64,000 nt of DNA from Neoconidiobolus thromboides FSU 785 (Eukaryota > Fungi > Entomophthoromycota). Positions 2,942 to 10,438 of this stretch are shown piece after piece; positions within the stretch are counted from its first letter, which is position 1; each line of letters opens with the position of its first letter. Where the stretch lies: assembly GCA_025603075.1 (NCBI GenBank), contig MU626360.1, positions 13,531 to 77,530 on the forward strand. The letters run 5' to 3'. Both the position numbers and the translations under genes were made by a program. Below the pieces are notes generated by a model. That model searched no databases. It was not told the origin of the DNA and saw only the letters and a list, made by a program, of their open reading frames with translations.

Positions 2942-3030
2942 AGCGGTGTTTTTCCTGATTCATCACTTTTTCCATTTTTTTAAAGCACTGTTTGGGTGGA
3001 AAGGCTGTCAGTAAAATCCTCAAATATATT
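2942..3030 (-). mobile_element. MITE family A copy 3 (degraded)
   Basis: Core TTCATCACTTTTTCCATTTTTTTAAAGCACTGTTTGGGTGGAAAGG...AGTAAAATCCT matches the family; termini eroded. Confidence 0.7.
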
Positions 3031-3126
3031 AAAGACTTGTAAATTTAAAGCTCAAAACCTAGGTTAATTTTTAAATAAATTCCGGAACTGATTTGGACAT
3101 CCCCATATGAACTAAAATTAGTATAT

Positions 3127-3224
3127 GGGGATGTTTTTTTTGTCTCCATTACTTTTTCCATTTTTAAGCGCTATTTGGGTGGAAAAATTATTATCAAAAT
3201 TTTTGAACGAAAAAATATATCACC
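3127..3224 (-). mobile_element. MITE family A copy 4
   Basis: GGGGGATG...TATCACC with ATAT/ATAT flanks; an isolated terminus (CATCCCCC-ATAT) lies just upstream. Confidence 0.85.
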
Positions 3225-3830
3225 ATATTTTATATTAATTATAAATTAAGTATGCTTTTAGATTGATTTATTACTAGTTTAAATACATAAAACCTACTGG
3301 TTTAAAACTAATAATATACATGATTGCCTTATGAGTTATAGATTGCTTTTATTAAATATAAATTATAAAGTGAATAATAAAATCAAAATAATCCATCTAT
3401 GTAGATTTTATGACTTATATTTTTAATTGGTTTTTTTATATCAAGTCTTATGATCTATTTATTCAATTTTTAATCTGATAAAGGATTCATTGCAAATTTG
3501 AATATCCCGTATCTAATCGTTATATTATTATCCAAGGATTTATCTTTATTTGATTTTTTTCACTGATAATCTTGCAAGTATAAAAAAGAGAAAAAATATA
3601 AATTAAAAATTTCGGGCAAGTGTTAAAATAAGGTGTCAAAAATTCTAAAAGCAAGGATTAACTAAAAATAGCTATTATAATGACTACATAGTTTATCTCT
3701 GATACTTCATAGCCTTATTACGTTATTTGTTAATTGATTAATGTTGCTATTTACTCATAAATTTGTGCAATTTAAATTATTTAGAGTAAAGTGCGAAGTT
3801 AAAAGATATTAATATTTATGAATTTGAATA

Positions 3831-4877
3831 TTAAATAGATAGTTTATTAAAACACTTTAATTTACAGTCAAAGAACCTTGTATCTAGAAACGTTTCTTTT
3901 TTCTTTAACAAAAAATAGCCTCTAGTTTGATTAGTTGTTGAATCTAAACTTAACATTGAATCAAATAGCAATTTTAAGTCTACAAAAAATGGAGGGTATT
4001 TAAACCTAATTGTTTCAAGAGTTAGATCTAAATACAAAATTAGATATACTAATTTAGTTTACCTAGCCATATCTAAAACTAATACTTTATCAGTAATGGG
4101 ATCATAAGCTGCGATTGGTGAAAAATGGCCTGTCCCTGTTTGACCTAAGGTTTTACGATAAAAATTTAAAACTAAGCTTTCATTTTGTGAGCTACAAACT
4201 CTTTTTATATCTAAGCGAAATTTTTCTAAATCTAGGTTATCTCCACGCTGGCTTTGAACCTTGCAATGTCTTTTAGAAATACCTAAAAAAAGAACTTTTA
4301 GTATATAGACTGTAATATGATACTTTTACTTACAATGAAATTGATCAAACGTTACACCATTTTTTAGTATATATTCTGTAGGTATACATGCTTCCTCTAA
4401 TACAACACCTTCATCATACCTAATGAATAAAGTATTATTAAGCTGCTATTTTTAATATATAACTAGTTACCATCTCCAAACTCCTTTCCATTGTTTTAAA
4501 GGATCGATCCCCAAAGCGTTTAAGCACATTACTAGAGAGCTTACACCACAAACTAAAAATTATAAGCTGAAGTTTTAAGTATTTGGGATAATATTACATG
4601 CAGGTTCACTTTGAAAAGAGAAATGGCCAACTGTATTAAAATAAGCTTCGGTATATCCAGATTTCATAGAGTTTTTGAAGTGATCTTTTCCTTCTTTACT
4701 ACTCAAAGCTATTAAGTGTTTTGGTAATGGTTTTTGATAGTAACTCAGTGGTATATCTTTATTATTATCTGTAGCTAATTTGGCAGCGATCGGCGAACTT
4801 GTAAAAACATTGTTTGTATGTTGTAGGATGGTCGATAAACTAGATATTCTCTTAGTGGTCTGTTTTAACGAATTCAT
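3831..4877 (-). CDS. PCS1: Phytochelatin synthase (glutathione gamma-glutamylcysteinyltransferase), multi-exon
   Basis: Spliced reading gives QSEPAFCGVSSLVMCLNALGIDP..WKGVWRW, GQTGTGHFSPIAAYD and LDMARFKYPP, so the Cys/His/Asp triad motifs are all present. The 3' end is uncertain. Confidence 0.93.
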
Positions 4878-4980
4878 ATTTTAATAAATAGTTAGTTGAT
4901 ATAAAAAATAAAAAGAGATAAAATTTTGATTTATTAATAAATCAATTTTCTTTTATAGCTTAGCATTATCAGTTTTTCTA

Positions 4981-5338
4981 TTATCTGATTTTTTTTATTC
5001 GATTTAAGCCAATTATTTTGATGTAACTTGATAAGTTAATTACAATGTGATTTAAGTTGATTCATCTGATAATTTTTTTCATCTGATAATTTTTCATCAG
5101 ATATCTTTGTAGAACCCAGCTTAATTTTATAATAAATAAAACTTAAAAATTAATCTTACTGAATAAAGGTATTGTTTACATATTATAAATTGTTAAACCA
5201 ATATTAATAGAAATATGATTTAAATTGCCATTTTATATCAAAGTGTATCTAAATTAGTAATAACTGCCTATAAGTAGATAGGCTCTCTAGGTCTATTAAG
5301 CTTGATTATAATCTCTTAATATTAAAGTTATCAGATAT
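4981..5338. promoter_or_regulatory. Cluster of ATCWGATAW (extended GATA) sites upstream of PCS
   Basis: Sites at 4981-4989 (reverse strand, ATCAGATAA), 5064-5072 and 5081-5089 (ATCTGATAA), 5096-5104 (ATCAGATAT) and 5328-5336 (reverse strand, ATCTGATAA); all 100-460 bp upstream of the PCS ATG. Confidence 0.6.
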
Positions 5339-6293
5339 AATCAACAGCAGTTTATTAGTAAAACAACTACTAATAAGATCTTAAACCAATTATGAAGTTA
5401 TAATTCTTTGATATAAGTTAAAAATATCAGTACAAGTATAAAATGACCCATATTAAATAAACCAATAGCTTTAACGTATAACTGCGTTTTTTACCTATTT
5501 CCTTTTTTGCTATTTTAAAAGTTGAAATTGATCTGCTAATGCAACTATTTAAGTTCAAATGTGCGCTAATAAATGGCAAATTTTGTAATTGATTATTTGC
5601 TTATCATAATAGCTTGACACCTACTATCTAATTCTTGTTTTAAAACAAGCAATTAGCTAATACTTAACCAAGTTTGAACAGGATACTGTTCAATTAACTT
5701 CTAAACTTAAAGAAATAGCAAAAAAGGACAATCAGTAAAAAATATACCCATATGTATAATTTAACTTATAGCCACACCAATTACTTGCAAAATTAAGAAT
5801 GACTTCATTTGTAAGATAGATTTTTAGAATTGTAATATCAAATTTTTATCTGTTGAATATCAGATTAAAAGTATAGACGGAACTTTATATTTATATTAAG
5901 TATTTTAAAAAATATCAGTGGTCAAAAAAATATATAATATTTCACCTGCTTGCAAATTTTGTTTTCTGTTTAAAGAAAAAGGTTTTTTAAATAAGTTTAT
6001 TTGTAAGCTTTTACTATAGCTTTGTATCATTAAATGTACCAACAAAGTATAAGCCATACAATTTATATTTGATACTTGAATACAATATTTATTTACAATT
6101 AAGGCTAAATTTTCAAGTTCTTATTTATTACAATATAGCATTATTTTGCATCATTTTGGAAATAATGATTGATTCATGTTTTTTATCATTATAAAAGGAA
6201 TAATCTCATATTATCATCATTAGAATTAGATGGATATATAACTTATGTTAAAGTTAAATTGATAAAAAAGTTATTTTGAAAAAGCCAATGAAC

Positions 6294-6390
6294 GGGGATG
6301 TATTTTTGTGTTTAAGAATTTTACTAACAAATTTTCCATTCAAATAGTGCTTAAAAGATGGAAAAAGCGATGAAGCTAAAAAACACCCCC
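6294..6390 (+). mobile_element. MITE family A copy 5
   Basis: GGGGATGTATTTTTGTGTTTAAGAATTTTAC...AAACACCCCC; TSD imperfect (GAAC/AAAT). Confidence 0.88.
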
Positions 6391-6525
6391 AAATACAGAA
6401 GTGATTAAAAATGATTAAGGGAAAAAATAAAATACTAAAAGCAGACTTTAGGTAAAAACAGCTGCACGAATTGTAAGTCATTGTTTACAGTTTTAACCTA
6501 GTTCATTTTCAAGAGTAAAAGTAAC

Positions 6526-6596
6526 TTCCTCATGGGGAATCGAAGCCCAATCGCTCTGGTGAAAGCGAAAAACATCAGCCATTAGACCTTTAATCT
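6526..6596 (-). pseudogene. Degenerate tRNA-Glu(TTC)-like sequence
   Basis: The minus strand reads GGTCTAATGGCT..CGCT-TTC-ACC..TTCGATTCCCCATGAGGAA. Glu-type D-arm, anticodon loop and T-loop are recognisable, but the 5' acceptor strand does not pair with the 3' strand. Confidence 0.6.
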
Positions 6597-7083
6597 GTTT
6601 CAGTCTACCAATAAACGTTTACATGCCTTTTGACTCGGTTTCCTATACTTTGATAACAACTTAATCCACTTAACTAACCTTCAGTTAAATCCCAACTACT
6701 GGACCATAAAGAGCTAATATTAATGTTAAAAGTTTAATATAGCCTGTTTTTGAAATAAAGTTAATTAAATATTTTAGCCATTGGAGTTTATGTATTCCTT
6801 CTAGGTTTTTAAATAGAAAGCGTTCTAAACTCTTTTAAGAATATGACATTTTACATTATTTAGCTTGACAATGGTACTAATATTCGATTTTGTACTATTT
6901 ATATACTTAATTATATATATATTAGATATTTATAAGCTAATATTTTGAAGAATGTTAAAAGGTAACAAAGTTTAGATAATACTCATGACTAAATAATGGA
7001 TAATAATAAAACAGATAAAGTAAGATATATAATTATTTATTTTTTTCAAAAAAAGGCTATTTAACAAATGCAAACAAGCGAAC

Positions 7084-7998
7084 TTAGCAAAAGTTGCTAT
7101 CGATCAAAATACCAAAATACTCTACATGCGAAGGAAGGTCTAATACAACCCTAGGTACACCAAGGGAACAGTTAGGATCTTCTAAGGCTGTGTTAGAACA
7201 ATAGTGAGGCCCCCTTCTATCTAAGTAAATTTCGTTACCATGATGGGTATAATCCAAGACTATTCTTGGAGGGAGCCTTGGTATCAAGTCAGCAAACTGA
7301 ACTACTCGCGCTGTTTTTAACGGTTTTGAGTTATACCATCTAGCAAAATTGGAGTTCCCTACACGCGTTTGGCCATAAGTGAATAAGGAAATACGTTCCC
7401 AATCCAAGTCAAGGACAGCTTGGGTTCTAGCAGCTGCTAGAGAAGCTATCGAGCCACCCATAGAATGGCCAATGAATTTTATATTGTAATTCTTGTACTC
7501 TTCTTGTTGTAGCAATGAATCAATGATTTCCAAAAACTGTTTAGATACAGAATCCATTGCTCGATAAATACCAAGATGAACACGTATTTTGGTATCTCCA
7601 GCGTCTGGGAATTGAGTGTTTAATAGATAAGTGGTATCCAATAGGTTACTGATACTATTTAACCCACGAAATACTATAAATATTGATTTATCGTCTTCAT
7701 CAATACCTACATAGCCTTGAATTTCAAATAAAAAGTCACTAAACGCTTGTATAAATTTTGTATTTGGAAGAGTATCACATAACCTACAATCCCAGTTTTT
7801 TATTTTATTAGGGTTGCATAGACCACTAGCCGCGTACCATACATTTCTTTTGGCTTCTTTTATAGTCGCTCTTTTAGTAACATATTTTAGACCCAAGCTA
7901 TGATCTGCTATAGCTAAATCGTATATCTCTTCAGAGGTTATTAATTGGGAATATATAGTGTGAAAAGTTAAAAAGAATAAAAATAGAAGGGAGTTCAT
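7084..7998 (-). CDS. Secreted class 3 lipase (alpha/beta hydrolase), intronless
   Basis: Signal peptide; VFRG, GHSMGG nucleophile elbow, TYGQTRVGN, D in ADLIPRLPP, C-terminal His (HVEYFG). Confidence 0.93.
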   Translation of the reverse strand: MNSLLFLFFLTFHTIYSQLITSEEIYDLAIADHSLGLKYVTKRATIKEAKRNVWYAASGLCNPNKIKNWDCRLCDTLPNTKFIQAFSDFLFEIQGYVGIDEDDKSIFIVFRGLNSISNLLDTTYLLNTQFPDAGDTKIRVHLGIYRAMDSVSKQFLEIIDSLLQQEEYKNYNIKFIGHSMGGSIASLAAARTQAVLDLDWERISLFTYGQTRVGNSNFARWYNSKPLKTARVVQFADLIPRLPPRIVLDYTHHGNEIYLDRRGPHYCSNTALEDPNCSLGVPRVVLDLPSHVEYFGILIDSNFC

Positions 7999-9297
7999 TA
8001 TTAATTAGATAAACTTATTTCTTTTCTCAAAAAAATAATCAAAAGTTATGATAAATAAAAGAATTGAAGTATTATATATATATTAATTACTTCTTTAATC
8101 TAGTGCCATGCTTTCCGTTATTTAAACTGCTCTCAATATTAAAACTCAACATTTCTTTCAACGGGTAGAATTTGCTACTCTATTTTTGGAAACTGAGCAT
8201 TAATCGGTTTAAATTTCGAGTATACAGTTACTTCAACTCTATTTAACTTAATTTGCGAAGACTTTTAGAACTGATTATTTGTTTATTTAGCTTCTTTTAA
8301 CCTTAATTTGCAAACTTGGTATATTTTATCTAAAAAAATTCTTAAATGAACAGTTAAATATGTCACAATAAAGTTGCATCAATTGAAATTATTAAAGGAA
8401 TATTAATTGGTAGTTAAAAATATCACTCTACGTTACAATCTAGAAATTGAGATTGAAAATTTAATGCTCCTATTAAACAAGTTGACATTAAATATAGCCA
8501 TCATTTTCAAGGCAATTTTTAAAATGGAATTCAATGTTTAAAGATGTTCTGGCCTTCAAATCCAAAGTTTCTTTGGTAAGCCTTATATATCCTTTAACTA
8601 CTATCGATTCTATACTATTTGAACATTAAACTGACTAAAAATCACTTTTACAATGTCATCATTAAAATGCTTTTTATTACAATTAATGCCTATTTATAGG
8701 TTTATTTTCTAATGAGAAAGTTTATGTCAAGAACTATACAAAGCACATATTAGCTAAATTAGTACCCCAATCATTTATGCCTTATATTATTGAATTTGTA
8801 CTTAAAAAGTAGATAAAATACTAAAGAAATTATGTTATAACCTATATAATAGGACAACATATTTCAATTTGATTTTATAATATATCTGTAATTGAATTAA
8901 CTTATATTCAAATCTACCTTATAATTACTATAATGACTCAGACATTTAAGAAGCAAAACTTTTAAAGTCGAACATTCACTAAGTTTAACTCCATATAAAC
9001 TTGAAAGTTTTATCATCACAAAACTAATGTACAAACTAAGAGATGATGCCAGTATTATGAAACTGAAGCATTAAGGTGTTAATAAAACATTATTATCAGT
9101 AAATTTTAAAAGAATTTTTTATTAAGAAAAATGTTACAAGCTAAGCTTAATTTTTATTGATTTTTATTATAATTCATACTGCTAATAGCTTATACTATTA
9201 CTTTGTTATATAGATTTTTAAAATGATATAACAGCTAAAATATATATATTTGATGATGAAACTTGAGGATGCTAAAAATAATTAATAACCAAAATAT

Positions 9298-9396
9298 GAA
9301 GATGTATTTTTGTGTTTAAGAATTTTACCAACAAATTTTCCACTTAAATAGCGCTTGAAAAATGGAAAAAATAATGAAACTGAAAAAAACACTCCC
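9298..9396 (+). mobile_element. MITE family A copy 6
   Basis: GAAGATG...CACTCCC with ATAT/ATAT flanks. Confidence 0.88.
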
Positions 9397-10438
9397 ATAT
9401 TCTTCAAAAATGTCTTAATTATAGTTCTAGACAAATAAATATAAAAAAATACAAATGAAAAATAGTTGATTTTTTATAGCTAATAATTAATTAAAATACA
9501 ATAAAATTAAATAAAACCAAACTAGAATATAGTAACATTCAATAGTTACAAATATAAGAGGTTTTATTCCCAGGACCTTTATTTCCATGGTGTGTTTTTG
9601 ATATTAGTAGATATGGCAAACATACACTATCTACTATTTCAAAACAATGTGATTTGTATTAAGTTTCAAAAAAATAAAGACAAAGCGTAATACATCATAA
9701 TTACCTGATATTCGATATAAATTTCCGACCTAATGTTTATTTAAATAAACTATTTATTAGATCTTATTTTTATATTTTTTATGTAAACAAGATTAAATTA
9801 ACCACAATGCTATGCCTGAATTTACGAATCAGAGATAAATTATTGTATTTACAATTATTAAATAATTCTCTTATTGTTTATCTTTACGTTATTTAAAAAC
9901 TTTGAGTTATTTAACAGAATTTTGTACAAACTTTGTTTTGTAAGCTGTAATAGCTACTGGAAAGTAAATTAAAATAGTGCTAACAACCCAAAATTATAGT
10001 AATAAAATTAAAATCGAGATCATAAAAGAGAGATCATTTCAATGAAAGATGATTTCAAAATAAACTAAAATATTTATTTGATGAAAAATAGGAGGTAAAT
10101 AAAAGGTTAATTTAAACTAATCTAATATCATAGCAAATAGCATAAACATAAATTAAGGTAAAATACTAAAAACTTGCTTAAAAAAAAGATATAGAAATAA
10201 TAAACAGTGGTGACAAAATGACGACATAAAGAAGGTCAGACGGCTAATAGGTGGATTTAGAAAAAATAATAAATAAATAAACAAACATTTCACAACTAAA
10301 AATAACAAAATATTTATTATTATGAATCCTACAATTTATAACATTACACAAAACTTGAAAACAAAAAAAGTGAAAACACAACTCAAATGAGCTTACTAAT
10401 AGATTATGATTTTAATTTTTTCCTCTATGATACCAAAA

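Follow-up and report, generated by a model that had tools for sequence, protein, structure and literature searches.

An SreA/Fep1-type GATA box cluster upstream of a divergent phytochelatin synthase gene of Neoconidiobolus thromboides suggests expression at low iron

Introduction

Phytochelatin synthases (PCSs) are usually regarded as enzymes with constitutive expression whose activation by toxic metals is post-translational, and their role in organisms without cadmium exposure is a long-standing puzzle. The SreA/Fep1 regulon, for its part, is known mainly from Dikarya.

The closest described system is that of SreA in Aspergillus. The motif ATCWGATAA is over-represented in the SreA regulon of A. 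fumigatus and agrees with the sites that Urbs1 and Fep1 occupy in vivo (PMC2610380). The same motif was seen in silico in the promoter of the Mucor rhizoferrin synthetase (PMC9226013). The sequence Cys-X5-Cys-X8-Cys-X2-Cys between the two zinc fingers is the defining mark of Fep1 proteins (PMC4992955). Outside the fungi, vertebrate GATA-1 promoters carry the ATCWGATA palindrome, which is reported to require both fingers, as cited in PMC2610380.

Nothing was found in the literature that tied PCS to SreA or Fep1 regulation. The words 'phytochelatin' and 'glutathione' are absent from the text of the SreA paper (PMC2610380), and in an array study of iron and copper in S. pombe the expression of PCS could not be measured (PMC1929147). 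In addition, the PCS of Nitella mucronata is mentioned as implicated in iron(II)/(III) homeostasis (Fontanini et al. 2018, reference 77 in PMC8070800). What is cited there is a link at the level of enzyme activity, in a charophyte alga, whereas the case described here concerns transcription in a fungus and a putative iron-sensing GATA repressor.

In our study, the window was the whole analysed stretch of DNA (64,000 nucleotides; C103:13531-77530) from Neoconidiobolus thromboides FSU 785, the genome of which has 24.6 Mb and about 26% GC. It contains a PCS gene, named PCS1 here, for which the original prediction had proposed that a cluster of GATA boxes wires phytochelatin synthesis into the iron-starvation regulon. 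What is new is the target gene; both the cis-element and the regulators belong to types already described.

PCS1 gene and protein

The PCS1 gene has the following features:

3831..4877, minus strand: PCS1 gene, five exons, 280 aa, with PF05023 matches
4877-4598, minus strand: exon 1 of PCS1, ATG at 4877, with a PF05023 match
3831-3833, minus strand: stop codon of PCS1, within the gene span

The annotated product of PCS1 was KAI9294093.1 (P0121, 280 aa), which starts at 4877. The exons were searched one by one, and the database record P0121 was used for the whole-protein comparisons. In the Pfam search, the exons scored above the cut-off of PF05023. The columns of the Cys/His/Asp triad were conserved in the alignment, with the active-site Cys lying within SEPAFCG and the His202 and Asp220 columns invariant. 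Since the catalytic triad is intact, PCS1 is predicted to be probably an active enzyme, either a gamma-glutamylcysteine transpeptidase or a glutathione-cleaving enzyme.

The nearest known counterpart was NsPCS (Alr0975, PDB 2BTW/2BU3), a cyanobacterial half-PCS, to which residues 51-259 of PCS1 aligned with an E value of 4e-29 (2BTW). Like NsPCS, PCS1 consists of the catalytic domain only, with a similar length and conserved catalytic residues. Unlike NsPCS, it is eukaryotic and spliced, and it possesses an N-terminal extension of 45 residues rich in Ser, Thr and Lys. The C-terminal end, at 280 aa, lies about 20 residues past the catalytic domain, and the Cys-rich C-terminal regulatory domain of eukaryotic PCSs was absent from the protein. 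The identity between PCS1 and 120 other PCSs was 32-39%, and that between PCS1 and its paralogue PCS2 was 44% over the shared half. By these alignments, PCS1 is a divergent, short, catalytic-domain-only PCS paralogue, distinct from canonical PCS.

Boxes upstream of PCS1

The pattern ATCWGATAW gave six strand matches upstream of PCS1, at 4981-5338 and 104-461 bp from the ATG. The six strand matches correspond to five places, because 5328-5336 (minus strand) and 5330-5338 (plus strand) form one palindrome. The five places in about 360 bp upstream of the ATG that had been reported from the letters of the window were thus confirmed, and so was their assignment to the extended palindromic SreA/Fep1 type, the motif being that described in PMC2610380. 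The boxes and their surroundings are as follows:

4981..4989, minus strand: box 1, ATCAGATAA, ~110 bp upstream of the PCS1 ATG
5061..5103, plus strand: tandem repeat with a unit of 15-17 bp (TTCATCTGATAATTTTT), 2.7 copies, bearing boxes 2-4
5064..5072, plus strand: box 2, ATCTGATAA, ~190 bp upstream of the PCS1 ATG
5081..5089, plus strand: box 3, ATCTGATAA, ~210 bp upstream of the PCS1 ATG
5096..5104, plus strand: box 4, ATCAGATAT, weaker (T at position 9), ~220 bp upstream of the PCS1 ATG
5328..5338: box 5, a palindrome of ATCTGATAA (minus strand) over ATCAGATAT (plus strand), ~455 bp upstream of the PCS1 ATG
5857..5865, minus strand: distal box 6, ATCTGATAT, ~980 bp upstream of the PCS1 ATG, membership of the module uncertain
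3473..3481, plus strand: lone ATCTGATAA, ~350 bp downstream of the PCS1 stop, membership of the module uncertain
7084-7998, minus strand: lipase gene, the next gene beyond the PCS1 promoter

Within 1 kb upstream of PCS1 there were four strict ATCWGATAA and three relaxed strand matches at six places, and 8 of the 11 ATCWGATAW matches of the window fell in 2.4 kb around the gene. The positions of the PCS1 boxes, ~110-460 bp upstream, matched the range found in the other box clusters of this genome. In the array at 5064-5104, two copies were identical 17-mers and the third copy had diverged. Furthermore, the boxes at PCS1 had the flanks cATCWGATAAt, which were closest to those of the boxes at the C70 GATA gene (see below), while the boxes at the siderophore synthetase genes showed a preference for ATCWGATAAa. 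Small tandem repeats were frequent near PCS1, with seven TRF rows in 3.5 kb.

At 2.2 kb, the intergenic stretch between PCS1 and the lipase gene is long by the standards of this genome. It contains a MITE-like repeat and a tRNA relic. The earlier statement that no divergent gene is visible at the sites was borne out, as no plus-strand ORF of more than 41 aa was present between 5340 and 7083, and no Rfam family matched at 4800-7200. An origin of the boxes from a dispersed repeat, an objection raised along with the prediction, was ruled out, since the 523-bp promoter of PCS1 occurs only once in the genome.

The box cluster compared with chance

In the window, ATCWGATAW had 11 matches, compared with 5.85 expected from shuffles. 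In the whole genome, there were 2408 strand matches in 24.6 Mb, equal to one per ~10 kb on both strands, and about 1855 matches of the reversed control pattern. The frequency of one site per 7-8 kb estimated beforehand was therefore slightly generous.

The boxes at 5064-5104 are non-independent events because they are copies of the 15-17 bp tandem repeat. With the five PCS1 sites taken as independent, an analytic estimate gave ~0.002-0.01 such clusters expected genome-wide. When the array was counted once, the genome-wide estimate rose to 9-20 clusters of three 7-bp cores. At a Poisson rate of ~0.08 extended places per kb, obtained from the genome-wide count, the genome-wide expectation was ~0.5 for three extended places in 360 bp and ~0.1 for four extended places in 1 kb. 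The 1 kb upstream of PCS1 possessed four independent places, all of them extended matches. With the array collapsed, the significance of the PCS1 cluster was moderate. Beyond the boxes, the PCS1 promoter showed no enrichment of plain HGATAR, with 8 sites seen, of which 5 lay inside boxes and 3 outside, compared with 2.8 expected.

The spacing of the cores was also compared with the control pattern in the whole genome, with the following numbers of core pairs:

Gap 2-32 bp: 59 pairs, control 16
Gap 33-63 bp: 44 pairs, control 14
Gap 64-94 bp: 37 pairs, control 17

Pairs of the palindromic core were thus 2-4 times commoner than those of the control, and the excess fell with distance, as is expected of functional site clusters. 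Moreover, tight triples occurred at four loci in the genome and at none in the control. The non-coding tight triples were only those of the PCS1 promoter, the C98 SreA-like gene and the C70 AreA-like GATA gene, so that by tight triples the PCS1 promoter ranks among the most box-dense promoters of the genome. The tight triple on C48 was rejected as a promoter array, being an acidic coding repeat of E/I-S-D codons.

GATA regulators in the genome

The Pfam GATA scan revealed three two-finger GATA genes in the genome, C98, C85 and C70. The C98 protein (403 aa) had CX2CX17CX2C fingers at residues 57 and 145, and the C85 protein (480 aa) had the same type of fingers at residues 72 and 163. Both possessed the linker CX5CX8CX2C between the fingers, at residue 114 in C98 and residue 131 in C85. 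The linker sequence GTCxGDGxCxGTGGxxxCxGCP was invariant in an alignment of C98 and C85 with P0372, a homologue from Komagataella pastoris, and with homologues that bear the annotation Sfu1 or Urbs1. The top named matches of C98 and C85 were 'Suppressor of ferric uptake 1' from Basidiobolus, Entomophthora and Umbelopsis and 'Siderophore biosynthesis regulatory protein URBS1', all of these names being automatic annotation. In the Atlas, the C98 protein was annotated as 'GATA' only.

On the basis of fingers and linker, C98 and C85 are regulators of the SreA/Fep1/Sfu1/Urbs1 type and predicted iron-responsive repressors. The SreA/Fep1-type factor that the original prediction called for was found twice in N. 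thromboides, with two GATA fingers and a Cys-rich linker as in the SreA system (PMC2610380). In comparison with Fep1 of S. pombe and K. pastoris, Sfu1 of Candida and Urbs1 of Ustilago (PMC4992955), the fingers and the linker are shared with the aligned K. pastoris homologue and the homologues annotated as Sfu1 or Urbs1, and the presence of two paralogous repressors is a difference.

The third protein, C70 (650 aa), did not contain the CX5CX8CX2C linker, and its second finger was atypical (CX2CX18CX2C). The Atlas clusters nearest to it, found in a language-model look-alike search alone, bore the GATA_AreA domain. By this resemblance, C70 is a two-finger AreA/Gat1-like factor.

Box at other genes of the genome

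The genes next to box pairs were read for part of the pairs, about 60 further pairs being unannotated and nine closest-gap pairs standing outside the listed ones. The boxes upstream of the genes of interest were as follows:

NIS1 siderophore synthetase gene: 5-6 box cores within 1.2 kb upstream
NIS2 siderophore synthetase gene: 3 box cores within 220 bp upstream
C98 SreA-like gene: 8 box cores within 925 bp upstream
C85 SreA-like gene: 3 box cores within 590 bp upstream
C70 GATA gene: 6 box cores within 1 kb upstream, including four in 80 bp
DUF1636 gene: 3 box cores upstream
Siderophore-type MFS genes: a core pair 70-150 bp upstream in 2 of 5 intact genes
Multicopper oxidase promoters: one box each in 5 of 10
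PCS2, three ferric-reductase/NOX genes and two window neighbours: zero boxes

The enrichment at NIS1, NIS2, C98 and the DUF1636 gene had Poisson P values of 1e-6 to 1e-9, and C85 was outside that range. NIS1 and NIS2 lie on C247, on either side of a gene for a FetB-like permease. Their products contain IucA/IucC and FhuF domains, and the best NCBIfam match was the rhizoferrin protein FslA. A core pair was also present upstream of a mitochondrial-carrier gene. A further box cluster, on C1, sits in 6 kb without any ORF.

The N. thromboides boxes were similar to those of the SreA regulon of A. fumigatus and A. nidulans, with the identical extended palindrome, several per promoter, at siderophore biosynthesis genes. 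Unlike in the SreA regulon, the siderophore genes were of the NIS type and not of the NRPS type. As a further difference, neither FTR1 (PF03239) nor the HapX signature turned up in the genome. The 17-residue HapX/Hap4 Pfam model had no match anywhere in the genome and is hence uninformative. The three Ferric_reduct genes, which had no box, may be NADPH oxidases. Accordingly, the box marks iron-acquisition genes of N. thromboides, though not all of them. The siderophore synthetase genes and the regulators' own genes support the iron reading of the motif; the undetected FTR1, the box-free ferric-reductase genes and the single boxes of the multicopper oxidases count against it.

No Nramp, ZIP or gamma-glutamylcysteine synthetase gene was near any listed box pair. 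With FTR1 undetected as well, the earlier suggestion that phytochelatins detoxify metals entering through induced iron transporters gained no support. For nitrogen genes, the single ammonium transporter gene and four amino-acid permease genes had no listed box pair nearby, which is a weak test covering pairs only.

Regulation of PCS1 and alternative explanations

The box cluster suggests that PCS1 is switched on at low iron. In the explanation that we prefer, with a probability of about 0.5, PCS1 and the siderophore genes would be repressed jointly by SreA-like proteins in an iron-dependent manner. The PCS1 boxes would be a cluster of predicted binding sites for two-finger GATA factors, and their likeliest binders would be the C98 repressor, the C85 repressor, or both, which are of the SreA/Fep1 type. 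With ample iron, an iron-sulfur cluster would form on the Cys-rich linker of the repressor, by analogy with SreA, Fep1, Sfu1 and Urbs1, and the iron-loaded repressor would bind ATCWGATAA and keep PCS1 off. When iron is scarce, the repressor would leave the DNA, and PCS1 would be made alongside the siderophore synthetases. The observations are the sites with their non-random clustering, the two regulators and the occurrence of the box at siderophore genes; the identity of the binder, the direction of regulation and the iron dependence at PCS1 are what we infer.

The cluster might instead be functionless, consisting of chance matches in AT-rich DNA that were amplified by slippage of the 15-17 bp unit. 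Two identical 17-mers in the array and the small tandem repeats common in the neighbourhood (the seven TRF rows) would fit slippage, and the 9-20 three-core clusters expected when the array is counted once would fit chance. This explanation is unlikely, albeit a real competitor: only ~0.1 clusters of four independent extended places in 1 kb, as seen at PCS1, are expected genome-wide, and the other two of the three non-coding tight-triple loci in 24.6 Mb belong to GATA-factor genes, with none in the reversed control. The array of the C70 promoter has near-identical flanks too, so that local duplication seems to be how such arrays grow. The array could, on the other hand, be genuine and serve another GATA factor, most plausibly C70, with a signal other than iron, such as nitrogen or development. 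No promoter has this box more densely arrayed than that of C70 itself (four sites in 80 bp and six in 1 kb), the PCS1 box flanks are nearest to those of the C70 boxes, the Atlas clusters nearest to C70 bear the AreA domain, and the palindromic ATCWGATA is reported to be bound by two-finger GATA factors generally, for which vertebrate GATA-1 is cited in PMC2610380. However, the same class of box occurs at NIS1 and NIS2 and at the two SreA-like genes, the AreA-like label of C70 comes from the look-alike search alone and its second finger is atypical, the AreA site HGATAR is not enriched in the PCS1 promoter, and the ammonium transporter and amino-acid permease genes had no listed box pair close by. 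Regulation of PCS1 by C70 is unlikely, although C70 is the main competitor of the SreA-like proteins as binder, and of the objection that an AreA-type factor binds the boxes, what stands is the array in the C70 promoter itself and the likeness of the flanks, and what does not is the expected HGATAR enrichment and the link to listed nitrogen genes.

It is very improbable that the boxes serve an unannotated transcript, either a non-coding RNA or a small-exon gene, that runs away from PCS1 into 5340-7083. The unusual length of the 2.2 kb intergenic stretch and the similar C1 cluster in 6 kb without ORF would agree with such a transcript, but the stretch has zero plus-strand ORFs above 41 aa and zero Rfam families, it is partly made up of the MITE-like repeat and the tRNA relic, and the ATG nearest to the boxes is that of PCS1.

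With vertebrate GATA-1, as far as it is cited in PMC2610380, N. thromboides has in common that the palindrome lies in the factor's own promoter, here at C70 and C98. Unlike in the N. thromboides case, GATA-1 is an animal developmental regulator with no iron-sensing link.

PCS2, PCS genes of other fungi and the history of PCS1

PCS2 (C165) is the canonical paralogue, with about 50% identity to other PCSs and the long C-terminal part present. No box was found in its 470-bp intergenic region. Furthermore, ATCWGATAW was present within 1.5 kb upstream in 0 of 6 canonical PCS genes of other fungi, the promoters being those of Massospora, two Basidiobolus species, Syncephalis, Lichtheimia and S. pombe. 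The last of these is a difference from N. thromboides within a Fep1 species, its PCS promoter having no box within 1.5 kb. Conservation of the box upstream of canonical PCS genes in other fungi was accordingly not seen, conservation upstream of PCS having been brought up by the original prediction. Because PCS2 and the six promoters are without box, the box wiring is, among the promoters compared, confined to the divergent PCS1 and is not general for fungal PCS. The claim that phytochelatin synthesis is wired to iron was too broad for the same reason, PCS1 being divergent and the canonical PCS promoters having no box; what remains of it is the box cluster at PCS1.

If PCS1 is indeed controlled in this way, a PCS-fold enzyme would be under an iron-sensing repressor, which would point to a physiological function tied to an essential metal. 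The SreA/Fep1 regulon would then extend to a lineage that diverged early and infects insects, and its targets would include a new kind. As a speculation that we consider doubtful, the truncated paralogue may have been recruited to the iron-starvation regulon after duplication, and its product, possibly organellar, may have glutathione or gamma-glutamylcysteine peptides as substrates, the processing of which would serve iron handling or Fe-S/glutathione-based iron sensing and not cadmium defence. Such a recruitment would give the PCS fold a physiological function that is new for fungi.

No close orthologue of PCS1 was found in a set of 1.84 billion cluster representatives, in which P0121 formed a singleton cluster. 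The most PCS1-like fragment was P0124, which lies on a 1-kb Logan contig.

Box clusters in the genome

Boxes (the extended GATA site of SreA/Fep1-type iron repressors, ATCWGATAW/ATCWGATAA) and their palindromic 7-bp cores were found at these loci, among others, in the N. thromboides genome (G000), where L-numbers denote stretches of its contigs:

L035 3778-9901 and L036 (G000:C247:18.8-26 kb), siderophore cluster
L025 1499-1671 (G000:C18, ~80.98-81.15 kb), three palindromic ATCWGATAA boxes
G000:C113:19809-19904, pair of core boxes
L043 3085-3563 (G000:C1:191082-191568), 4-5 boxes in 480 bp

The intergenic DNA of the siderophore cluster contained nine box cores. Here, a FetB-like UPF0014 permease gene lay between two NIS synthetase genes, arranged divergently and tandemly, and both synthetases possessed IucA/IucC and FhuF domains and were FslA-like. 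A DUF1636 gene had the C18 boxes in its upstream region, at a distance of 240-400 bp. The C113 pair preceded, by 430-530 bp, a minus-strand gene (C113:18518-19377) for a mitochondrial carrier that may be mitoferrin. The 6-kb stretch around the C1 cluster contained no ORF reaching 80 aa.

A further array preceded a GATA factor gene on C70:

L040 3412-5364, minus strand, two-finger GATA factor gene, product of 650 aa
L040 5365-6400 (G000:C70, ~71.4-72.4 kb), its upstream region with boxes

The protein lacked the Cys-rich linker and, judged from its Atlas look-alikes, appeared to be AreA/Gat1-like. The gene's own promoter carried boxes of the ATCWGATAA type, with four of them within 80 bp and six within 1 kb. 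This array could reflect autoregulation, or the gene could be controlled by the SreA-like repressors.

Other iron-related gene families

The FTR1 iron permease (PF03239) was not detected in a search of the whole genome, although 12 multicopper oxidase genes were present. A single ATCWGATAW was found 540-760 bp upstream in five of ten multicopper oxidase promoters. Siderophore-type MFS copies were located as follows:

G000:C14:112855
G000:C70:85770
G000:C53:43220-45211
G000:C354:6420

Five copies of this family were near full length, and one of the five contained an in-frame TGA. Several others were disrupted by many stop codons.

Surroundings and N-terminal extension of PCS1

The following features were found in the window around the phytochelatin-synthase-like gene PCS1:

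2418-2640, 2950-3230, 6280-6395 and 9284-9410, MITE-like dispersed repeat of ~116 nt
~6526-6600, minus strand, tRNA-like relic in which sequence resembling a T-arm and a D-arm was recognised
4745-4877, minus strand, PCS1 N-terminal extension (first 45 codons)

The repeat copies were both direct and inverted, and none overlapped the GATA boxes in the window. The tRNA-like relic was called by neither ARAGORN nor Rfam. Ser, Thr and Lys were abundant in the extension, and acidic residues were absent from it ahead of position 37; by eye it looked like an organelle-targeting sequence.
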